Both the position numbers and the translations under genes were made by a program. A stretch of 59,970 nt of DNA, counting the filler, from Platydemus manokwari (lineage: Eukaryota): assembly GCA_037951405.1 (NCBI GenBank). It is 5 parts of 5 records of this genome, joined end to end, with 100 filler letters (N's around TTAATTAATTAA, not from the genome) between each part and the next. Parts side by side here need not be neighbours in the genome. Positions count along the whole stretch, not along the records: positions 48,521 to 59,970 come from JBBMOY010575551.1; 4 more parts are not named here. One strand, written 5' to 3'. Shown piece after piece: positions 48,521-59,970 of this stretch (position 1 is its first letter; each line of letters begins with the position of its first letter). Below the pieces are notes generated by a model. The model saw only the letters and a program-made list of their open reading frames with translations. It was not told the origin of the DNA and made no database searches.

Positions 48521-48544
48521 TATAGAAAAATTATTATTTCGAAC

Positions 48545-51500
48545 CGGTTCATAAACTTTTGGCATATCGAAATCAGCGTCGTCTGGCTCATCTCCAGTAG
48601 CTTCTTGAGCATCTCTACATAAGAAAACATAAATAAAGTTGTATAGTCACACATTGAATAAAGCTGTTAAATGCAATGCATTCAGCAATTTCCGGTTATC
48701 ACAGCAATGATACCTCATGAAATCCATGAACCACGAATCCACCTCCATCAATTGATTTTGAGCGACAAATTCTTCTGGAAATTCTTCCGATAGGCATCTC
48801 TTGATAGCTTTTGTGAACCAATTAATATCTTCCACTTGAACAAATCTATAGGTTAGCAAACAGATGTTGTTAGCAAATGTTAGAGGAGCATTGGTTAAAT
48901 AATTAGTTAAAATAGCGTAGGCTACACTGACCATTCTGGTCAGGATTACCTTAAAAAGTCCACAAAATAACTATCATCGTCGAAATATTGTAAACAACCG
49001 TCACCAAATACTTCTTCGATAGTTCGAACAAGTGCTTTGTTAAACCAGTTAATATTTTCATGAGTAGTGAATCTATCAATAGTTCAGATTATAGAATTTT
49101 ATTGATTTTTATTATTATTTTTTTTTATTATTATTATTATTATCTTTTTTATCATTATTATTATTGTTATTATTATTGTAAGGGATAAATAATCGTTTAA
49201 TGATATGAGTCCATATTGATTGTTTGTTTAAGTATGTTGAATGGATGAGTCATAACTGTTAGACATATCAAATCTATTTCTCTGATCGACAGAATTATTA
49301 ATTAGGACAACTATCCATATAAAATAGACAGAATTTTATAAACAATATTTGCGTTCATTAAGCCAATCATCATCATTACACTGTACGCCATAAGATATTC
49401 AATTATTTATCTGATAATCATATTTCAATCTAACCTGTCTGAAATCACTCGGCAACATTCGTGTTTCCAAAGTCCGAAAAGAGTTTTTGCATTAACAATA
49501 ACATCGCTCTGAGTGTTGATCATACCCTGCCAGATTCGACTGAGATCTCGCAAATTGAATACATAATGGAATTTTGCTGGTGTTGGCAGCATTTTGGATT
49601 TCGTCAATTGCCATAATCGTCTCGTTATTGGAATGAGATTTTTAACGAGACCACATATCTTGATTAATTGGAATTATTATAATTATTATCGATTTGATAA
49701 TTATTATTTTAATTAATTATTAATTGACTGATGAGAATAATTATAATTATTTTTTTAAGTTGATTATAAATGATTGGCATTAAAATTATTATTGTTGATT
49801 GATTGATGCCTGATTGACTTTATTAGATTAATTTTACCGATAATTAGTATTTTATTATTATTATTATTATTATTATTTATTATTATTATTATTATTTATT
49901 ATTATTATTAATATCGTTAATATCATATGTCATCGTTATTATTACTTTAATTATTATTTATTATCATAATCTATTATCATTTTCATTATTATGATTATAT
50001 ATTATCATTAATTTCATAATATTTCCTCATAAGAATTATAATGATCTTACTTCATCAGTGAATCCTCTCTCCTTGCAATAATGCCCCGTACCAATGATGC
50101 TGAATATTTTATCAATACTATTGTTGCTTGGCAAAGTACAGTTAAAAATGCAGAATTGTCTCTTCAATCGCTGTGGAATATCATTTCTGCCACCACCTGG
50201 ATGAATCATAGCAGCCATAAATTGCATATCCACAATATTTGTAAAATCTCCTGGCTTCTCTAGATTGTAGAATCCTCTCACTTCCAACAATTGTCGAACG
50301 ATCTCGTTAGCAATCTATAATTTGCAGAAATATGGTTTTAATATCCATAAACCGATATCGATTATCGCCAAACCTGATCTCCCCACTCATTAATGACGGG
50401 CATATTTATATCATCGATGAAGACAGTCATTTTACGCCCAGCCGGTGGTCCATACGTGCTTCCCATTCGTTTGTCAACAAAACTCTCAATCGTTCTTTGG
50501 AACAAGAATGGTACGGTAGCACTGGAGAAATTCAAAGATTTGAACATATGGAATTCAGGATTCTTATTGGAGAGATATTTGTTGATCATGACCGTTTTGG
50601 CTGTACCTTGTTCTCCGATCAGCAGTACAGCTTTCTCCTGCGATGCTATAACGTGCATTAGAAACTCTGTGCGAACATTATCGACATTAGGCACGAGGAT
50701 AGATCCATATTCGGGAGTTGAATCATGAGGATAGATGTATTCCTCTACTTTAGAATTCCAGTGAACCCATTCGCCATTGTCACCGACCATATAATCAAAT
50801 ATGGTTTCCTCGGAATCTTTATCAATTTTCGGAAGATCTAATTTTATATTCTCAGTCGTCCGGATGAATGTTTCCAGCTTAATTCTGTCTTCCAATTCCA
50901 ACAATGATCCGACACTCCACATTAATACAAACACATACAAACGCTCATAATGTTCACGAGATATCTAAACAAATCCAAAATAATCGATATCAAATCAATA
51001 GCTTAAATCTTAATTCCACCTGAGAAGTGTCCTTTTCGTCTTTACGAGGTAGCAAACCTTCCAATAAATCACATGCCTGTCGAACTACAAAAGCTTCTAA
51101 AGTATCCATTTTGTAATTGAGGTACTGAATTGAATAACGGTAAATATCCGGGAATGATTTAGAGAAAAGGTCCAAAATTATTTCTCGTTCATTTGCATTT
51201 CTCTTCAATAACCATGCTTTAAGAATGGGACACCAATCAAGAGCCGAACTACTCATGAACACCATTCCTATTATTACAGAAAATAATGAATAAATAAATC
51301 GAATATATTTATCCGTCACATTACCATTTCTTGACACAGTAGCTGGTGAAGCATTGTCGATATTGTGAACTTCAAAGACAATTTTACAGGATGGTGACAT
51401 TGGAATTCGGTCACCGTTAGCCAATGTTAAGGTCTTATTATCGTCAAGGACAGAATTCAAATTTTCAATCCAAATAGCATCCACCGGCCCATCGAGGACA

Positions 51501-53872
51501 AGCCAAATGTGTTCACCTTTCTTTCCTTTGAGGGTTCGTCGCCACAATGTTGAAAATATACCATCGGTCCAATCATTCGTTGCAACATCCAGCCGACCAA
51601 ACATCTGTGGTGCTGTGATGGCTTTTGGATTCATTCTCATTTCTCGATGAGGTTCTCCACAATCACCCATAGCCTAAATATTATTTCAAACAATCTATTC
51701 TGGTTCTTATATATAATGAAACCTTCATCAATATATGAATACAACACGTTTTTCCTGCTCCAGAAGGGCCTAATGTCATCATTCCATGTCGGACTCGTTG
51801 AGTTTCAAAGAGTTGAATTAACTTAAGAACCCATGGTGGATGAGGTATGATAAGAGCATCTTCAATCTGTTTTGTAATCGCTGCCTCGAGATCTGGATAG
51901 CCACCTTTATCAAGTGTTATTCCTGAAAATTTTAGTGAAAATAATAATTTCAGAAATCATCCAAGCATCATTTACCTGGGAACAAATCGTTGATTAAAGA
52001 AATGAACAAGGGTTCATCTTGATCAACAAGCTTGCTCAAATTCATGTCTCTCAATACTCGCATGACCGTCGTTTGTTCAGTGTCGGTGGGATTAGCTCGT
52101 TTCTGTTGACCAAGAGTTCTCAACACTGATAAAATGTTTCTCAATCCAAAATCATAATGGACCTAAAATGTCAGTAATGATGAATATACATCCATATTGT
52201 CAATAGATCCAACCTGTTTCGTGAGTTGTTCTTCGCATAGTTTGTATAACGTATAGAATTTTCTAGCCAGAACGATATTGTCGATAAAACCGCATGAAGC
52301 TAATTTCACACGGATAATAATCTGACGATCTGGAACCATCATAGCGACGTTTCTGAAATTGATTTTCAAATTTTCCGGTAATTCCTGTCTGCCGGCATAA
52401 CCAGGATTCTGAGAAGTAACAATTGAAATAATTCTTGATTAATAGTTATCGTACCATTGTAAGGAAAAGTCCGAATTCTGGATTCATATCCACCAGATCT
52501 CCATCAGTGAACAAGAATTGTTTCTTTCTTTCCTTCTTACACGACAAAACCACTGCAATTTGCTGTGCAGCAACGGATAACACTGGTAGATCAATTCGAT
52601 TGAATTCATCAAAGCATCCCCACGATCCTGACTGAGATAAACCTTTGAAAATTCTTCCAAGACCTCGGAAATCCATTTGATCAGAGCAATTAAAGACAAC
52701 AACGTATTTTCCAAGACAACGACCCATATCTTTAACAGTTTCTGTTTTTCCCGTTCCTGCAGGACCAGCTGGAGCACCTCCCATAGACATTCCCAATGCT
52801 TGAGCTAGAGTAATGTAGCACCTGAAAGATAACAAATATTCTTTGATAAGACTTCGTTTGATAAAGATAATATCGATAAGGATAATTTCTATTTCTATCA
52901 TTATCATTACCTATCAGTGAGAGGCGTGATAACCAATCTCTCAGTACATCCCAGAAACTCATTCTGATATATGAAATCCACATCAGTGATCGAAACAATA
53001 CATTTGTCAACATCTTCAACGAAATAAAATCTTGTTTGTTTCAGCCAATCGAAATCAGTTGGCGATTTGATTTTATCTTTTACCTGGATAATAATAAAAT
53101 AGAAAAGTAAAAAATCAATTGTTATATCAATCCACAACCAGTTGATCGAAGATATCTTTCTGGTGAACGTGAATTGTGATCAGTGTTTCAAATTTAGTCC
53201 GCTCAACTTTGCCGAGATCGGTTGTTGTTTGTTGAATGAGAAGATTTAATAATTGCAAGAAGTGGTCGTTTGTTTGCTGCATGATTTTCTTATCGGATTT
53301 GGCATTCAATAAAGCTTCAGTGGCATCTCTCGTCCAAATGAACTGAATTCCTAGCAATCCAATTTGCGCTGGATACATGTTGAGAAATTCGAGCACATTG
53401 AATTCATTGTCATTGATCGTGTTGTAAGCCGTTCTAATGACACTATGGAGAGATTTTTGGGCCATATTCAAGAGAGCCATTAACCACACTTCTACATTGC
53501 TTTCTGCCTTAACTGGTTTTTCCAACTTTAAAAGAGAATGTGTGGATAAATATAAATGTTGAGAGAACAAGAAAATCTTACTTCCAGCGCTTCTCCTTCT
53601 GACGAGTAGCATGACAAAATGGTTTCGTATTGTTTTTCATGAAATTTAACAGTCTTGATATTGTCGAATACCGATAACAAATGAGCTTGAATTGTATGAG
53701 GATCTGAAGCTTGACCAAGAATTTCCAGTAGTGCTGGATCAGAAACGAAGAAAAATCGGGGAAAGAGTAATCTTTTCTTTTCGAGGTACCTATGGAAGAT
53801 TAATAATATTAATAATAATAAATTAATAATGGTAATAATAATGTTAATAATAATTATATTAATAATAATAAC

Positions 53873-53915
<43 letters not shown>

Positions 53916-56900
53916 TTAAAAATAGTAAATTAATAATGATAATAATAATGTTAATAATCATGTTAATAATAAAGTGAATACAAATTAATAAAAATCAAAC
54001 CCTGTTAAGCTCTTCTGACATATTTCTAATTGCTCAAGCAGGTGAGGTAATAATTGGCTTAATGTTTCATCTCCAACACAACATTGTAATACATTGATAT
54101 TCTCATGTGCTCGTGACATTATTTTGATCCAACTCTTATCAATATTACTAAATCTCTTAGCTTCTTTCGGTAGTTGTTTAGCAATATCACCTCCAACAAA
54201 TACAGCTTCTAAATAGACCCACAGATTTTGAACGGTCATCCATTGTTCAATGATTTCACTGGAATTTGAAAGCTTGAATACCATGTCTTGAATATCCTTT
54301 TTAAATGGAGTATTGTATCTATTGCTCAACAAGGAACTGAGAACCATCAATGAGTCCTCCATGATGGAAATTATTTCGCTCGTATGATCTCCCCGAAGAA
54401 GTAATTCACCACGATTTTTAAATGTTCCAAAATGCAATTCATGAGCACTCCATTCTGCTTTGACGGTTTTTAATTTAGCCTCAATATCCTTTTCTTTGAC
54501 AGCTGAAATGCAAATATCTTCAATTTCTTCTTTGAACTTCAATAACGGAGCTTCAAGAATGTTTCTCAAAGCGAAACCATCCGATTCCACATCGAAATGG
54601 TGTGCGGTCAAATCACTCATTCTCTGCCAATGACGTGGTTTCATCGCTTGGTTGGTCATCAATTCTAATAGCGGCACCATTGCATTGAAATCGTCAATTG
54701 TTTTCCTCAGATCTTCAAACGCTGGCCAGTCTTTCAGACCTTTCGGTAATTTTCGGCATCTATTTTGAAATTCGGTCAATTCATTAGATATCTTTTCGAT
54801 ATCGACATCTCCCCACAAGATATCATAGTAACTATTCACAGAATTTATGACGTCGTTGTAGAGACTGTATAGTTTTTGGAGAAGATTTAATTCTTTCTTG
54901 ATGTCTTTAAGTCTGGCATAATCGGTTACTTGGAGACCAAATAATTCTTCTCCTCCTGAATACGTGATAAATCTTCTTTCCAGATTGTCATATCGGTTCT
55001 GATGAATAATTAACCGATCTGAAGCTTCTCGTGGAGCCAGTCCAACAACCATTGGTCCACTCTATAATTTTCAAATATAAATTACATCTACAAAGGCTGA
55101 GCCATCTAAATTTACCTTATCGTAATCCATATAAAATTTAGAACAATCCTCTTTGAATATTTGGACGTTTTCTATCAATGTCGATCTAAATTCGGGCTGT
55201 ATTGAAATGAGATAATCTTGGACTTGTGATCCATGAGCGATCAATTTTTGCCATGTATATCTGAGAGTATCTACTCGTTCTGTCTCATCTTTCTGAACTG
55301 GTAGCTCATAGCGCACTAACATGGCATATGATTCTTCTACTGGCGTTATTGTCATATCAATTTTTATTTCATTTTCACGAATTTCCTGTCAACACACACA
55401 CATTTATTTCATGAATTATATGCACAGAAAGATTATCTAATAAATAATGGAATCAATATATCTATTATAGACCGAATAAAAATTTATAAATATCTATAAT
55501 TTATTGTATAAATCTATAAGATTTTTATTATTATTTTTTTATATTTTTTGTTTGTAGTTTGTTATTTTATTTTTGTAAGAAACTGATGTAATTATTATAT
55601 CATCAATCCATTATTAAACTATTTATTTATATAATATGAATTGAATCTAGAATATAATATAATATTAATAACCTTCAATGCCCCCATAGCAATTCGAATA
55701 TCATCAAGATCTTTGATCTGCCTGGACAATCTCTTTTCCAAATCTTCAGCAAATGTGAAAATTTTCTCCATTTCTGCTTTATACTTTACGTTGCAAGCTT
55801 TTCCATAACATACACGCCATGATTTCGTTTCAGAAAGCAGACCAATTTTCAGAAATTCAGTGAAGAGCGCTATTGGACCGCAATCATAATACATTTCCTC
55901 AGCATTAATTCTCTTCTCGATGTTTAAATAATCCTTAATGACGAAATCGAATTCTGACACTTTTGGGTCATCCTTCAGAAATTCATCCAAAGTCGTTTCC
56001 TTGTTCTTTGCCCAGAGTGAAGTGTAGGCATTGAATCGACTCATTGCTGTTTCAACTTCTTTTCTCGTTGAATTGATGCAAGTCGAGAGAAGTGATTGAA
56101 CTTTAGCAATCTCCTTATTTTCTGAGACATTTTTGAAGCAGTTCTTGTTCTGATAATTGAAGTTTTGATGTGTGCTCAAACCATCTTCATCTGCGAATTG
56201 GCTACTGCTGCCTAGTTTCATTTTAGCTCTTCGGCCAGTTCCCGAATCACTGAGTCCATCACTTATCGATTGAACAATACTAACAGTTGATTGTCGTCGA
56301 TTTACTGCATTTTCACCGACAAACATTCCAATTTCTTCATCTTCATCCTTTTCGTTTGACTACAATTATAAAATTTGGTGAAATCATCAAGCATTTATTT
56401 CTTTTTATCTTACCTGCAATGCTGCTGCTGCAAGTTGCTTGGCACTTTTCCTCTCTTTACTCCATTGGCTAATTCCTTTACTCACAGAAATAATCATGTA
56501 GGCCGTTTTGTTTACTGTGTGTTGGACCTCTTCCATGTTGGGAATCATAACAATATTAGGGATTTGTAGATGAGCATTGCAACGAAAGAAAGGTTTTGCG
56601 GATGATTTGACACTTGTATCTATTAAAAGAAATCAATGTCAACATGTAATACCAATAATTCCAAATTCAACCATAAGCTATCATTGTCGGAGCAGCAATT
56701 CTTTTTCGCAAGCTTTCTAAAGTGTTTCTGATAACCTTAACAACGGCTTCGAGATTTCGATGATGAAAATGAGTCAAAAGTTCATGAGCAGCTTCAGAAA
56801 TGTTGTGTTTGATTTCTTTGATTCTCTTTTTAGTATGAACGACTTGTGTTGGATGATCGGTTTGAGTTTTCGAAAGTTGTGACGGCGATTTTCTCATTGA

Positions 56901-59183
56901 TTTTCGTTCATCTTAGTTAGAGATTGAAAAATATAAACTAAAAAAAATGTCAGAAATAGAGATGGCTACCTGCACTTTCAATAATATCTTCTTCAAATAT
57001 TTCATCTGACTCGAAATCTTCTTGATCTCCACAAAGCATATTTATCAATTCATTTACTGATTCCTCTACGTTTTGAGATTTTGTGTTTAATATTTTCGCT
57101 GACGCGACGCATAATTCCTTGATTTTATTTAATTATTAATATTGTTGTCACTATTATTATTATAATTATCATTATTGTCATTAACATTATTATTATTATC
57201 ATTATTATTATTATTACTATTAATATCATTATTTTTATTAATATCATTATATTATTATCATTATTAATATCATTATTATTATCATTATTATTATTATCAT
57301 TATTATTATTATCATTATTATTATTAGTATCATTTACTTGTGTAGTGTATACAAATTCTTCAACAGTAACTGGAATATCGCTAGGCAGCTCACAGAGTAG
57401 AACATTACCCATTTCTTCTAACACTAGATCAATACGATATTTTCTCAGATCTTCTGCTCGTTCAAGCAATAACTCCATATCAGCCAGTCCAGCGTAGACA
57501 GAGTCGATGTATTCTTGTAGCTTCATGCTTGTCCAATTATGAGTAGTTAGACCAGGTTCAATGATTCTCTTTAATTTGGCCATTTTCAGAACCATAAGCA
57601 GTTCGTATTCAGGAGGTATTCTATTCGTCACATTTCTGATATAGTTCACCATCAGCTGACAAAATACAATGCTTAATTTATTGAATAATTACACGTAACC
57701 ATACCAATAATTTATTGTGAAATTCTTTGAGAGCATTTTGCTTCATTTTTAGATTGATCGCTGCTGGTGGAATGTCCAATTTGAGCTTCATCATTACATC
57801 GGTTTCTCGAGCAAGAATTAAAATATCTGGATCAAAATTCACATATAGTTCTTTAGTTTCTGGATGTCGAATGATCAAGGACGAATTCAATCCGGTATGT
57901 GTGGCATTGATCTAGATGGAGAAATATCAATCCAATCAAATCACTTGATGAATATCAAAGTCTAACCTGTCGAACCCATTCCTGATGATAAATTAGTTCA
58001 AACGATATTAAGGTTTCTGCCAATTTGTTGTAATTCTTTATAATTGGTTTTGCCTCTGGAGTCTTCAATAAAGCTGGATGTTCCTTTTCAAAAATTTCCA
58101 TCGGTCCTTGAATTCTTCTGAATAATTGACGAGCCCAAGCTATTTTCCCAGCTATTGGAGGCATATCTCTAGCAACAGGAGGATCTTCTTTATTCCGTGA
58201 ATAATGCTTGATAACTGCTTCTACGTCACGACCATAATGAGCAAGAATTTTCATGTATTTTTCTTCGATTCCTAAATCTGGAATATTTAGTCGTTCAAAC
58301 CTTCGAAGAGTTTGTATAGCTCTGCAGGTATTGGTGATTCGATCGAATATCGTATCCATGAAGTTTAGAATGTTGTTCTGAATATTGAATGTAGAATCAT
58401 GGTGAAAATCCATTAAAATAAATTAATAAAAGAATATTTTTAAAAAATTAAATAACTCTATCTTACATGCAGTTCCATAATCTGTCTATTAAAATCGTCA
58501 AAGTCTTGATTGAACTCTGTTTTACGTTGATCGAGAAAGTTATAATTCTTCTTCTTGATCACCGATGTCACCACATTGAATTTTGTGGCAATGCTCTCAA
58601 GACCTTCGATGTTGGCTTGAGAAAGAACTGAATAGGTTTTGATTGTTTCAAAGATTTGAATGATGCTCGTCAATCGTCGACAAAACGTGTCGAATTTTCC
58701 GAATATATACATCTCTGATAATTCGAATTGTTTCTCATTCGGTTGTTTCGATAATCGCTGCTTAGTTTCTTGGAAACAAGCTTGATAGACTTTACTCAGT
58801 TCACAGCAAAGTACAAGTCTTTTCAAGAGTTCATCCGAATCAAGAGTCCAAATCGTTTCCGTATTGTCATCACTGATGTAAATTTTGCAGCTTGTTATCA
58901 TTTGATTGGTGATCTTCACGAATAGTGACGTCATCTTTTCTGATGTGTTGTAGAATTGAGAAATGCTGTGAATCATCCTGACGGAATTGATCAATTTTGG
59001 AATGTTCTCTATCATCAAGGCCTACAAAAGATTTAAGTGATATATATTTTAAACGTTGCTTTGACAAACTGGATTATTTTGATAGAGTGGGGCACAATGT
59101 TCTTCCAGTGTATAAAGAAATTTGACATTATCTTTAGCTTCATTAGCAGCATCCGTGATTCTGCGATCCATTTCAATCCAGGT
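48545..59183 (-). CDS. DNAH5: Axonemal outer-arm dynein heavy chain, DNAH5/DNAH8 (gamma-type) family; partial, tail to AAA3/AAA4 junction
   Basis: More than 20 in-frame GT-AG exons. Tail [22 protein letters not shown]; linker [31 protein letters not shown]; AAA1 [10 protein letters not shown] and [10 protein letters not shown]; AAA2 GPSGAGKT and [30 protein letters not shown]; AAA3 [11 protein letters not shown] (typical of DNAH5/8); [25 protein letters not shown]5 and DNAH8 cannot be separated in an invertebrate. Confidence 0.95.
48714..48845 (-). CDS. Dynein alternative exon B (132 nt), paralogous to exon A
   Basis: ctaacctatag|A TTT...ATG AG|gtatca; encodes (R)[43 protein letters not shown](R). 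Confidence 0.85.
48950..49072 (-). CDS. Dynein alternative exon A (123 nt)
   Basis: gatag|A TTC...TTA AG|gtaatc; encodes (R)[40 protein letters not shown](R). Confidence 0.88.
49670..50020. repeat. (TTA)n low-complexity tract in a dynein intron
   Basis: Seen directly; a similar tract lies at 49100-49180. Confidence 0.85.
53800..53970. repeat. (AAT)n microsatellite filling a dynein intron
   Basis: Seen directly. Confidence 0.9.
57125..57330. repeat. (ATT/ATC)n microsatellite filling a dynein intron
   Basis: Seen directly; causes the spurious poly-N/poly-I tail of ORF 57125..57652. Confidence 0.9.
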
Positions 59184-59482
59184 CTGGAAGGAATTAATAA
59201 TATATCAAACTGGGATATTCGACCGAATGTTAAATTCAGTGAGTCGTATACATACTCATGCACAATCAATTTCCGATTGTTTAATAATAAAAATAAGGAA
59301 ATCAATAAGTCACTGAAATGGTCTTATAATTGTAAGACACTGAAAATCGATACAATTTTTCCAGAGATAAGATGAATCAAATAATTACCTAATAGTTGGC
59401 ACCAATCACTGGAGAAGTAATTTTAACACAGAACTCAAATAACCGAACAATATTAGAGACATCTTTTGAAAAACACAGATCC

Positions 59483-59496
59483 GTTGCCATAGAGAC
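59483..59496 (-). promoter_or_regulatory. RFX X-box
   Basis: Minus-strand GTCTCTATGGCAAC fits RTHNYYWTRRNRAC at 14/14 positions and lies in a ciliary gene. A second near-match ATAACCACGGTAAC lies at 59733-59746. Confidence 0.6.
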
Positions 59497-59970
59497 TCGT
59501 GTGTTAAGGTTTAAGATCGATATTTCCAAAGATGTACAACGCTGTGGCAACTATTTTACTGAAAACAATAGTTCTGGAAAACATATCTTGTACCGGAACA
59601 CTGTCAGACTAACAGAAAATTTGTTTTGTTGTTTTCAGCTATGAGAAAAGAATACGGTGTGCCATTATTATTATTTGAATAAACTCTCAGTAATAATATT
59701 GTTCGTTGAATGAAGACTTGTGTGCCAACTGTGTTACCGTGGTTATGAAACGATATTTTGCAAATGAAATGGGATGTATTGTGTGAGGGATTATGCATAA
59801 AGTAATTATTCTAAAATATTGCCATCAATATTTATAATCAATATAAATCAATTTAAATTTTCAATTCAAATTTAAACGAGAAAATGCATTAAATGATGTT
59901 TGTTCCTCTTGCATGCTATTAAGGGCGTTCACTACCATTTAGCTTCAAATGATGAATACTTCTTTTAGAT

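Follow-up and report, generated by a model that had tools for sequence, protein, structure and literature searches.

A tandem pair of homologous exons at the AAA3-AAA4 junction of a DNAH5/DNAH8-type outer-arm dynein gene of Platydemus manokwari as a candidate for mutually exclusive splicing

The frequency and power of the ciliary beat are set by outer-arm dynein. The subject of this report is a pair of adjacent homologous exons, referred to as exon A (copy 1) and exon B (copy 2), in an outer-arm dynein heavy chain gene of Platydemus manokwari (assembly GCA_037951405.1), which are candidates for alternative use. The window, that is the whole stretch of DNA that was analysed, comprises 59,970 nucleotides (nt) and consists of five parts of five records, which are joined end to end with 100 filler letters between each part and the next. 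The minus strand of positions 48521-59970, which come from record JBBMOY010575551.1, carries a partial dynein heavy chain gene that extends from the linker through the AAA3 lid. One edge of this piece (48521) lies just past the AAA3-AAA4 junction and the other (59970) in the N-terminal region, and the remaining gene is located outside the piece. Local computations on the window covered positions 48521-51455.

The gene encodes a DNAH5/DNAH8-type (gamma) outer-arm heavy chain and is the orthologue of the vertebrate DNAH5/DNAH8 pair. This assignment is based on an AAA3 exon of 200 amino acids, which reaches 282-290 bits against human DNAH5 (8j07) and the 4730-amino acid chain of the sperm doublet entry 9fqr in a comparison with solved structures, and whose best match among 1.8 billion representatives is Bufo DNAH8 (62% identity). 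Against the gamma chain of the Chlamydomonas outer arm and against DNAH9, this exon reaches 161 and 81 bits, respectively. Near-identical or related open reading frames (ORFs) carry the Pfam families PF12774, PF12775, PF17852, PF22597 and PF17857, and an orthologous locus, L013, goes on with AAA_8, MT, AAA_9, Dynein_heavy and Dynein_C. The exons of the window and of its relatives follow the order of a dynein motor, with the linker (DHC_N2), AAA1, AAA2, AAA3 plus lid, and AAA4.

Read along the minus strand, the pair is preceded by a constitutive upstream exon of 224 nt (49658-49435; phase 0 to phase 2), which has the boundaries caag/ATATGT and GACAG/gttaga and ends in ...CCRVISDR. This exon represents the core of the AAA3 lid (Pfam DYN_lid / AAA_lid_1), and its homologues carry PF22597 and PF17857. 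An AT-rich GT..AG intron of 362 nt (49434-49073) separates it from exon A (49072-48950), which is 123 nt long, stop-free, of phase 2-2 and bounded by tag/A..AAG/gtaatc, with YFVDFLR at its end. Exon A is followed by a GT..AG intron of 104 nt (48949-48846), which has branch-like ctaac motifs near its 3' end, and by exon B (48845-48714), which is 132 nt long, likewise stop-free and of phase 2-2, and bounded by tag/A..GAG/gtatca. Compared to exon A, exon B contains a three-codon insertion, and WFMDFMR replaces YFVDFLR. Both exons have lengths that are multiples of three and canonical AG/GT sites. A further GT..AG intron of 99 nt (48713-48615) leads to a constitutive downstream exon of 70 nt (48614-48545), which is preceded by ..tgtag and encodes an acidic loop and a strand; the next intron leaves the piece at 48521. 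Elsewhere in the window gene, introns are around 50 nt long, for instance at 50364-50315.

Exons A and B are homologous to each other: 17 of 43 positions are identical (around 40% at the protein level; E=1e-9 in a single BLASTP comparison), and each of them aligns separately to the same 41-residue stretch of human DNAH5 (2834-2875; entry 8j07). Exon A, with E=0.0036, is closer to this stretch than exon B. On a hidden Markov model (HMM) of the family, which was built from 107 distinct single-copy segments and includes no pair-bearing locus, exon A scores 49.4 bits and exon B 40.3 bits. Exon A is the more canonical and exon B the derived version of the segment.

The position of the segment in the motor can be read from Pfam boundaries on the Bufo protein, in which AAA_7 (AAA3) spans residues 2558-2732, the AAA3 lid models span 2758-2854 and AAA_8 (AAA4) begins at 2924. 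The alternative segment corresponds to residues 2834-2874 of this protein, and these boundaries place it where the AAA3 lid ends and the link to AAA4 begins. A fragment of a single-copy orthologue (P0412; 31-row alignment) was modelled with AlphaFold2, with a mean predicted local distance difference test (pLDDT) score of 70 and of about 90 over the helix. In this model, the segment consists of a long and a short helix followed by a beta-strand (YFVDFL), which pairs with a strand of the next exon (KIYEP) across a disordered acidic loop. As modelled, A and B would fill one and the same structural slot, consisting of the last long helix of the AAA3 lid, the short helix and the YFVDF strand toward AAA4.

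An initial annotation of the window had described the gene as a DNAH5/8-type outer-arm chain, the two exons as homologous and the segment as the end of AAA3 leading into AAA4. The bit scores against solved structures and the best representative, Bufo DNAH8, bear out the first of these statements; the BLASTP comparison together with the shared DNAH5 stretch agrees with the second, and the Pfam boundaries and the orthologue model with the third. The exon coordinates, frames, splice sites and flanking exons match those of the annotation in every detail that could be checked.

Contigs of related species were obtained via exon-level ORF anchors from ENA, JGI and NCBI assemblies; they include contigs of ERZ25070786, ERZ26052449, ERZ24900295, ERZ26052287, ERZ25084522, ERZ24986310, ERZ4903317, JGI 3300008966 and GCA_031546565.1. 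Exactly two homologous exons were found between the conserved flanking exons in all eight related species whose sequence reaches far enough, that is in nine species together with the window. The pair-bearing loci of these relatives are L003, L004, L005, L006, L009 (identical to L010), L011, L012 and L013 (in part identical to L014). Outside the count are L001, which is 92-96% identical to the window and whose contig stops 148 nt inside the intron that precedes exon A, and Schistosoma japonicum (L007), whose contig does not reach the region. The upstream exon is 96% identical in L001 and about 81% identical in L003-L006, and the downstream exon is 83-87% identical in L003-L006 and L009. The pair-bearing loci span GC contents of 28-47% and differ strongly in the size of their introns; the intron between the copies measures 104 nt in the window and 217-1992 nt in the relatives. 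All copies in the nine species have AG/GT sites, are of phase 2-2 and, except for copy 1 of L003, are 123-132 nt long. In total, 17 of the 18 copies are intact, and both copies are intact in eight of the nine species.

Two further observations were made on the surroundings of these loci. In L004 (L004:2170-5048) and L006 (L006:1-4872), the intron directly upstream of the AAA3-lid exon contains ORFs resembling long interspersed nuclear elements (RVT_1, Exo_endo_phos), which lie on opposite strands in the two loci. The gene at L013 (L013:1-14848; JGI 3300008966, also NCBI GCA_031546565.1) is very poor in introns, with exons of 404, 761, 437, 365 and 1253 codons, but has retained the small two-exon cluster, flanked by short introns of 146, 276 and 293 nt.

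The copies have diverged considerably from each other, with identities of only 20-54% in comparisons within and between species. On the family HMM, the 17 intact copies nevertheless score 24-67 bits, compared to 45-83 bits for family members, whereas the highest score among 80 stop-free windows taken from introns of these loci is 1.5 bits. Chance ORFs were rejected as an explanation of the copies on the basis of this control. Since the copies are open, in phase and profile-like in spite of their low identity, both exons must be under purifying selection at the protein level, and it is very probable that both are functional. Selection on both exons had been claimed in the initial annotation and is sustained by the presence of the pair in nine species, by the scores of both copies and by the number of intact copies.

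Copy 1 retains the canonical ending YFVDF[LMI]R, and copy 2 differs at the central valine (FMDFMR, FCHFLR, FGDFMR, FQDFMR or FCSFMR). In six of the eight species in which both copies are intact, the family HMM gives copy 2 a lower score than copy 1. A tree of the copies, which is based on 41 columns, is mostly without resolution. The two copies of a species never form a supported sister pair in it; the second copies of four species (window, L003, L004 and L012) fall into one group with a support of 85-92. The lack of supported sister pairs and the grouping of copy 2 in four species suggest that the duplication predates the split of those species, and the tree is in keeping with a single old duplication instead of several recent events.

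The exception among the copies is found in L003. Copy 1 of this locus (L003:8682-8794) comprises 113 nt, lacks the conserved tryptophan, is three codons short and changes frame between ..KFGDD and ..HYFVDYFR. Copy 2 (L003:9859-9984) has an open frame, but the canonical helix motif LKWFETTTTRVAH is found in a different one, a pattern that would result if around 14 residues had been scrambled by two frame shifts compensating each other. The other exons of L003 are clean, and an assembly error is not the obvious cause of these frame changes. Because copy 1 is frame-shifted and the rest of the gene is intact, L003 suggests that one copy alone may be sufficient to make a working protein.

The decay of a copy in L003 would also be in line with the idea that only one copy serves as a real exon, with the other being left over unused from the duplication and intact only in appearance. 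The lower scores of copy 2 on the family profile in six of eight species point in the same direction. However, both copies are open, in phase and flanked by AG/GT sites in eight of nine species despite their divergence, and both keep the residues that are conserved in the family, with scores far above those of the intron controls. A neutral stretch of 123 nt would not survive such divergence without acquiring stops, insertions or deletions, and a relic is considered unlikely.

In other dyneins, the segment occurs once. No second match to A or B was found among the 150 best representative dyneins, and the segment is not doubled in any of around 110 further ORFs that continue from the upstream exon into it. 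A doubled segment does not belong to the normal dynein architecture, because around 250 other dynein sequences carry a single one; the statement of the initial annotation that DNAH5/8 proteins contain this segment once holds for all representatives and further ORFs in this set. In the trematode Fasciolopsis buski (L008), the end of the upstream exon and a single copy are fused, and the next 4 kb contain no second one, so the pair is not universal. The counterpart of the upstream exon in this species (L008:10243-22871; GCA_008360955.1) is itself split by an intron of around 12.6 kb, its second half being the part that is fused with the segment. The gene at this locus is clearly that of a full dynein heavy chain, of which the annotated model is a fragment of 144 amino acids.

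The arrangement of exons A and B was compared with the criteria used by Pillmann et al. (2011) for clusters of mutually exclusive exons. The two exons are adjacent and lie between the same constitutive exons, are homologous, have a similar length, the same type of splice sites and the same phase, and correspond to one slot of the protein. We infer from these features that A and B are probably used in an either/or manner. According to the mechanism proposed here, an old tandem duplication of one 41-codon exon would have produced two adjacent, interchangeable exons, and each messenger RNA would take up either A or B by mutually exclusive splicing. One gene would thereby give rise to two isoforms of the motor, with differences confined to the AAA3-AAA4 junction, namely to the last lid helix and the first strand of the hairpin, and the choice between them would rest on regulated competition between splice sites.

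It is also conceivable that both exons are constitutively included, which would lead to a protein with a tandem helix-strand repeat between AAA3 and AAA4. Such a transcript would be in frame and mechanically possible, since both lengths are multiples of three and the 104-nt intron can be spliced, and purifying selection on both copies would be expected in this case, too. However, the doubled segment is seen in none of the around 250 dynein sequences. Moreover, both copies keep the phenylalanine at their start, the WF motif of the helix and the motif of the terminal strand, while the strand in the model has a single partner strand, which argues for one slot with two alternatives. The frame shift in copy 1 of L003 within an otherwise intact gene also speaks against constitutive co-inclusion, which we regard as improbable. 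That the pair results from faulty assembly, or from a duplication that is very recent and restricted to this genome, is most improbable: mis-assembly can create tandem duplications and only one sequencing run contains the stretch, but A and B differ in length and have a protein identity of only about 40%, and the same arrangement is present in independent assemblies of eight other species (ENA, JGI, NCBI), so that an identical error would have to have occurred in all nine.

Several observations weigh against the either/or use of A and B and have to be set beside the evidence in its favor. Inclusion or skipping of both exons would preserve the reading frame, and the intron between A and B is, with 104 nt, long enough to be spliced. 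U12-type sites are absent from the pair, where the donors are GT and lack a conserved U12 consensus in the window and in its relatives. The search for docking and selector sequences gave RNAduplex z values between +1.6 and -2.8 over the intron pairs of four species and revealed no consistent pair. A search of sequencing runs identified one run that contains the locus (0.95 of words), which is not recorded as RNA and probably represents the source DNA; RNA runs were not among the results. Two protein searches, which used the upstream exon or a profile combining this exon with both copies as query, returned hundreds of ORFs, among which no junction-crossing ORF from the pair-bearing clade was found; this result is silent on expression. 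Finally, the largely unresolved tree of 41 columns does not demonstrate that copy 1 is orthologous across species.

Some of these observations bear on how exclusivity could be enforced. Nonsense-mediated decay after a frame shift cannot enforce it, because both exon lengths are multiples of three, and steric hindrance is ruled out because 104 nt is well above the length of the introns of around 50 nt elsewhere in the gene. Incompatibility of U2- and U12-type splice sites is ruled out by the donors. The inverted repeats present in the window are only AT-rich and of low quality. The lack of a known enforcing mechanism lowers the certainty that A and B are strictly exclusive and leaves room for regulated competition between the two.

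It is possible, though not likely, that the pair represents an ancient and widely conserved either/or switch, by which a single DNAH5/8 gene supplies two outer-arm motors for different axonemes. That the two isoforms are specific for certain cell types, for instance for locomotory or excretory cilia on the one hand and sperm flagella on the other hand, or, as in the initial annotation, for epidermal or flame-cell cilia versus sperm flagella, is a conjecture, and a rather doubtful one. If such a switch existed, the pair would correspond, at the level of splicing, to the split into the genes DNAH5 and DNAH8 in vertebrates, and would show a second route to axoneme-specific motors. The AAA3-AAA4 junction would then be a tuning site of the outer-arm motor, with a small ring element of 41 residues that can be swapped, and the two isoforms of one gene would provide a clean natural experiment on the motor. 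The pair is also of relevance for genome annotation: since both exons preserve the reading frame, prediction programs can retain the two together or omit one of them, leading to wrong dynein models in these genomes.

Two additional features of the piece were recorded. A well-conserved dynein exon of the AAA2/AAA3 region, on the minus strand, contains positions 51456-51493. Further upstream in the gene, a long low-complexity run of AAT/GAT type (57330-57128, minus strand) reads as asparagine/aspartate repeats in an open frame that adjoins a coding exon; this run is probably an intronic simple sequence, although it is in frame with the preceding exon.

Isoforms of axonemal and other motors are produced in different ways in other animals. 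In vertebrates, DNAH5 and DNAH8 serve different axonemes, namely those of airway cilia and sperm flagella, respectively. Like the isoforms proposed here, they represent one outer-arm gamma-type heavy chain in two versions; however, they arose by duplication of the whole gene and differ along 4,600 residues, whereas the isoforms of the window gene would differ in only about 41. Drosophila Mhc is a single-copy motor gene, which produces isoforms through tandemly duplicated exons that code for the same piece of the motor and thereby tune its kinetics. The proposal for the window gene resembles this system in that the isoform would be chosen among tandem exons encoding the same piece of a motor domain. 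In contrast, Mhc belongs to another motor family and has several clusters with up to five alternatives, which have been validated experimentally, while the window gene contains one candidate cluster of two exons. The alternative exon sets of Mhc have been used as a test case for the prediction of mutually exclusive exons (PMC3228551).

The closest parallel within the dyneins is the cytoplasmic dynein DHC1 of Schistosoma mansoni, for which a mutually exclusive exon in the motor domain has been described (Pillmann et al. 2011, PMC3228551). A later article cites the DHC1 case again and mentions mutually exclusive exons in the dynein motor domain in general terms (Kollmar 2016, PMC5100056). A full-text literature search on axonemal dynein, DNAH5 and DNAH8 found no record of the exon pair reported here in an axonemal outer-arm chain. 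DHC1 and the window gene have in common that tandem homologous exons of the same phase are located inside a dynein motor domain, and the exons of DHC1 were likewise called mutually exclusive since both fill one slot of a large dynein alignment. However, DHC1 is a cytoplasmic dynein 1, its alternative exons are of identical length and the case concerns one species, whereas the pair in the window belongs to an axonemal gamma-type chain, occupies the AAA3-lid/AAA4 slot, has exons of 123 and 132 nt and is present in nine species. Taken together, tandem-duplicated exclusive exons in a dynein motor are known, and what is new is a candidate pair of such exons in an axonemal gamma-type chain, which is conserved in nine species.
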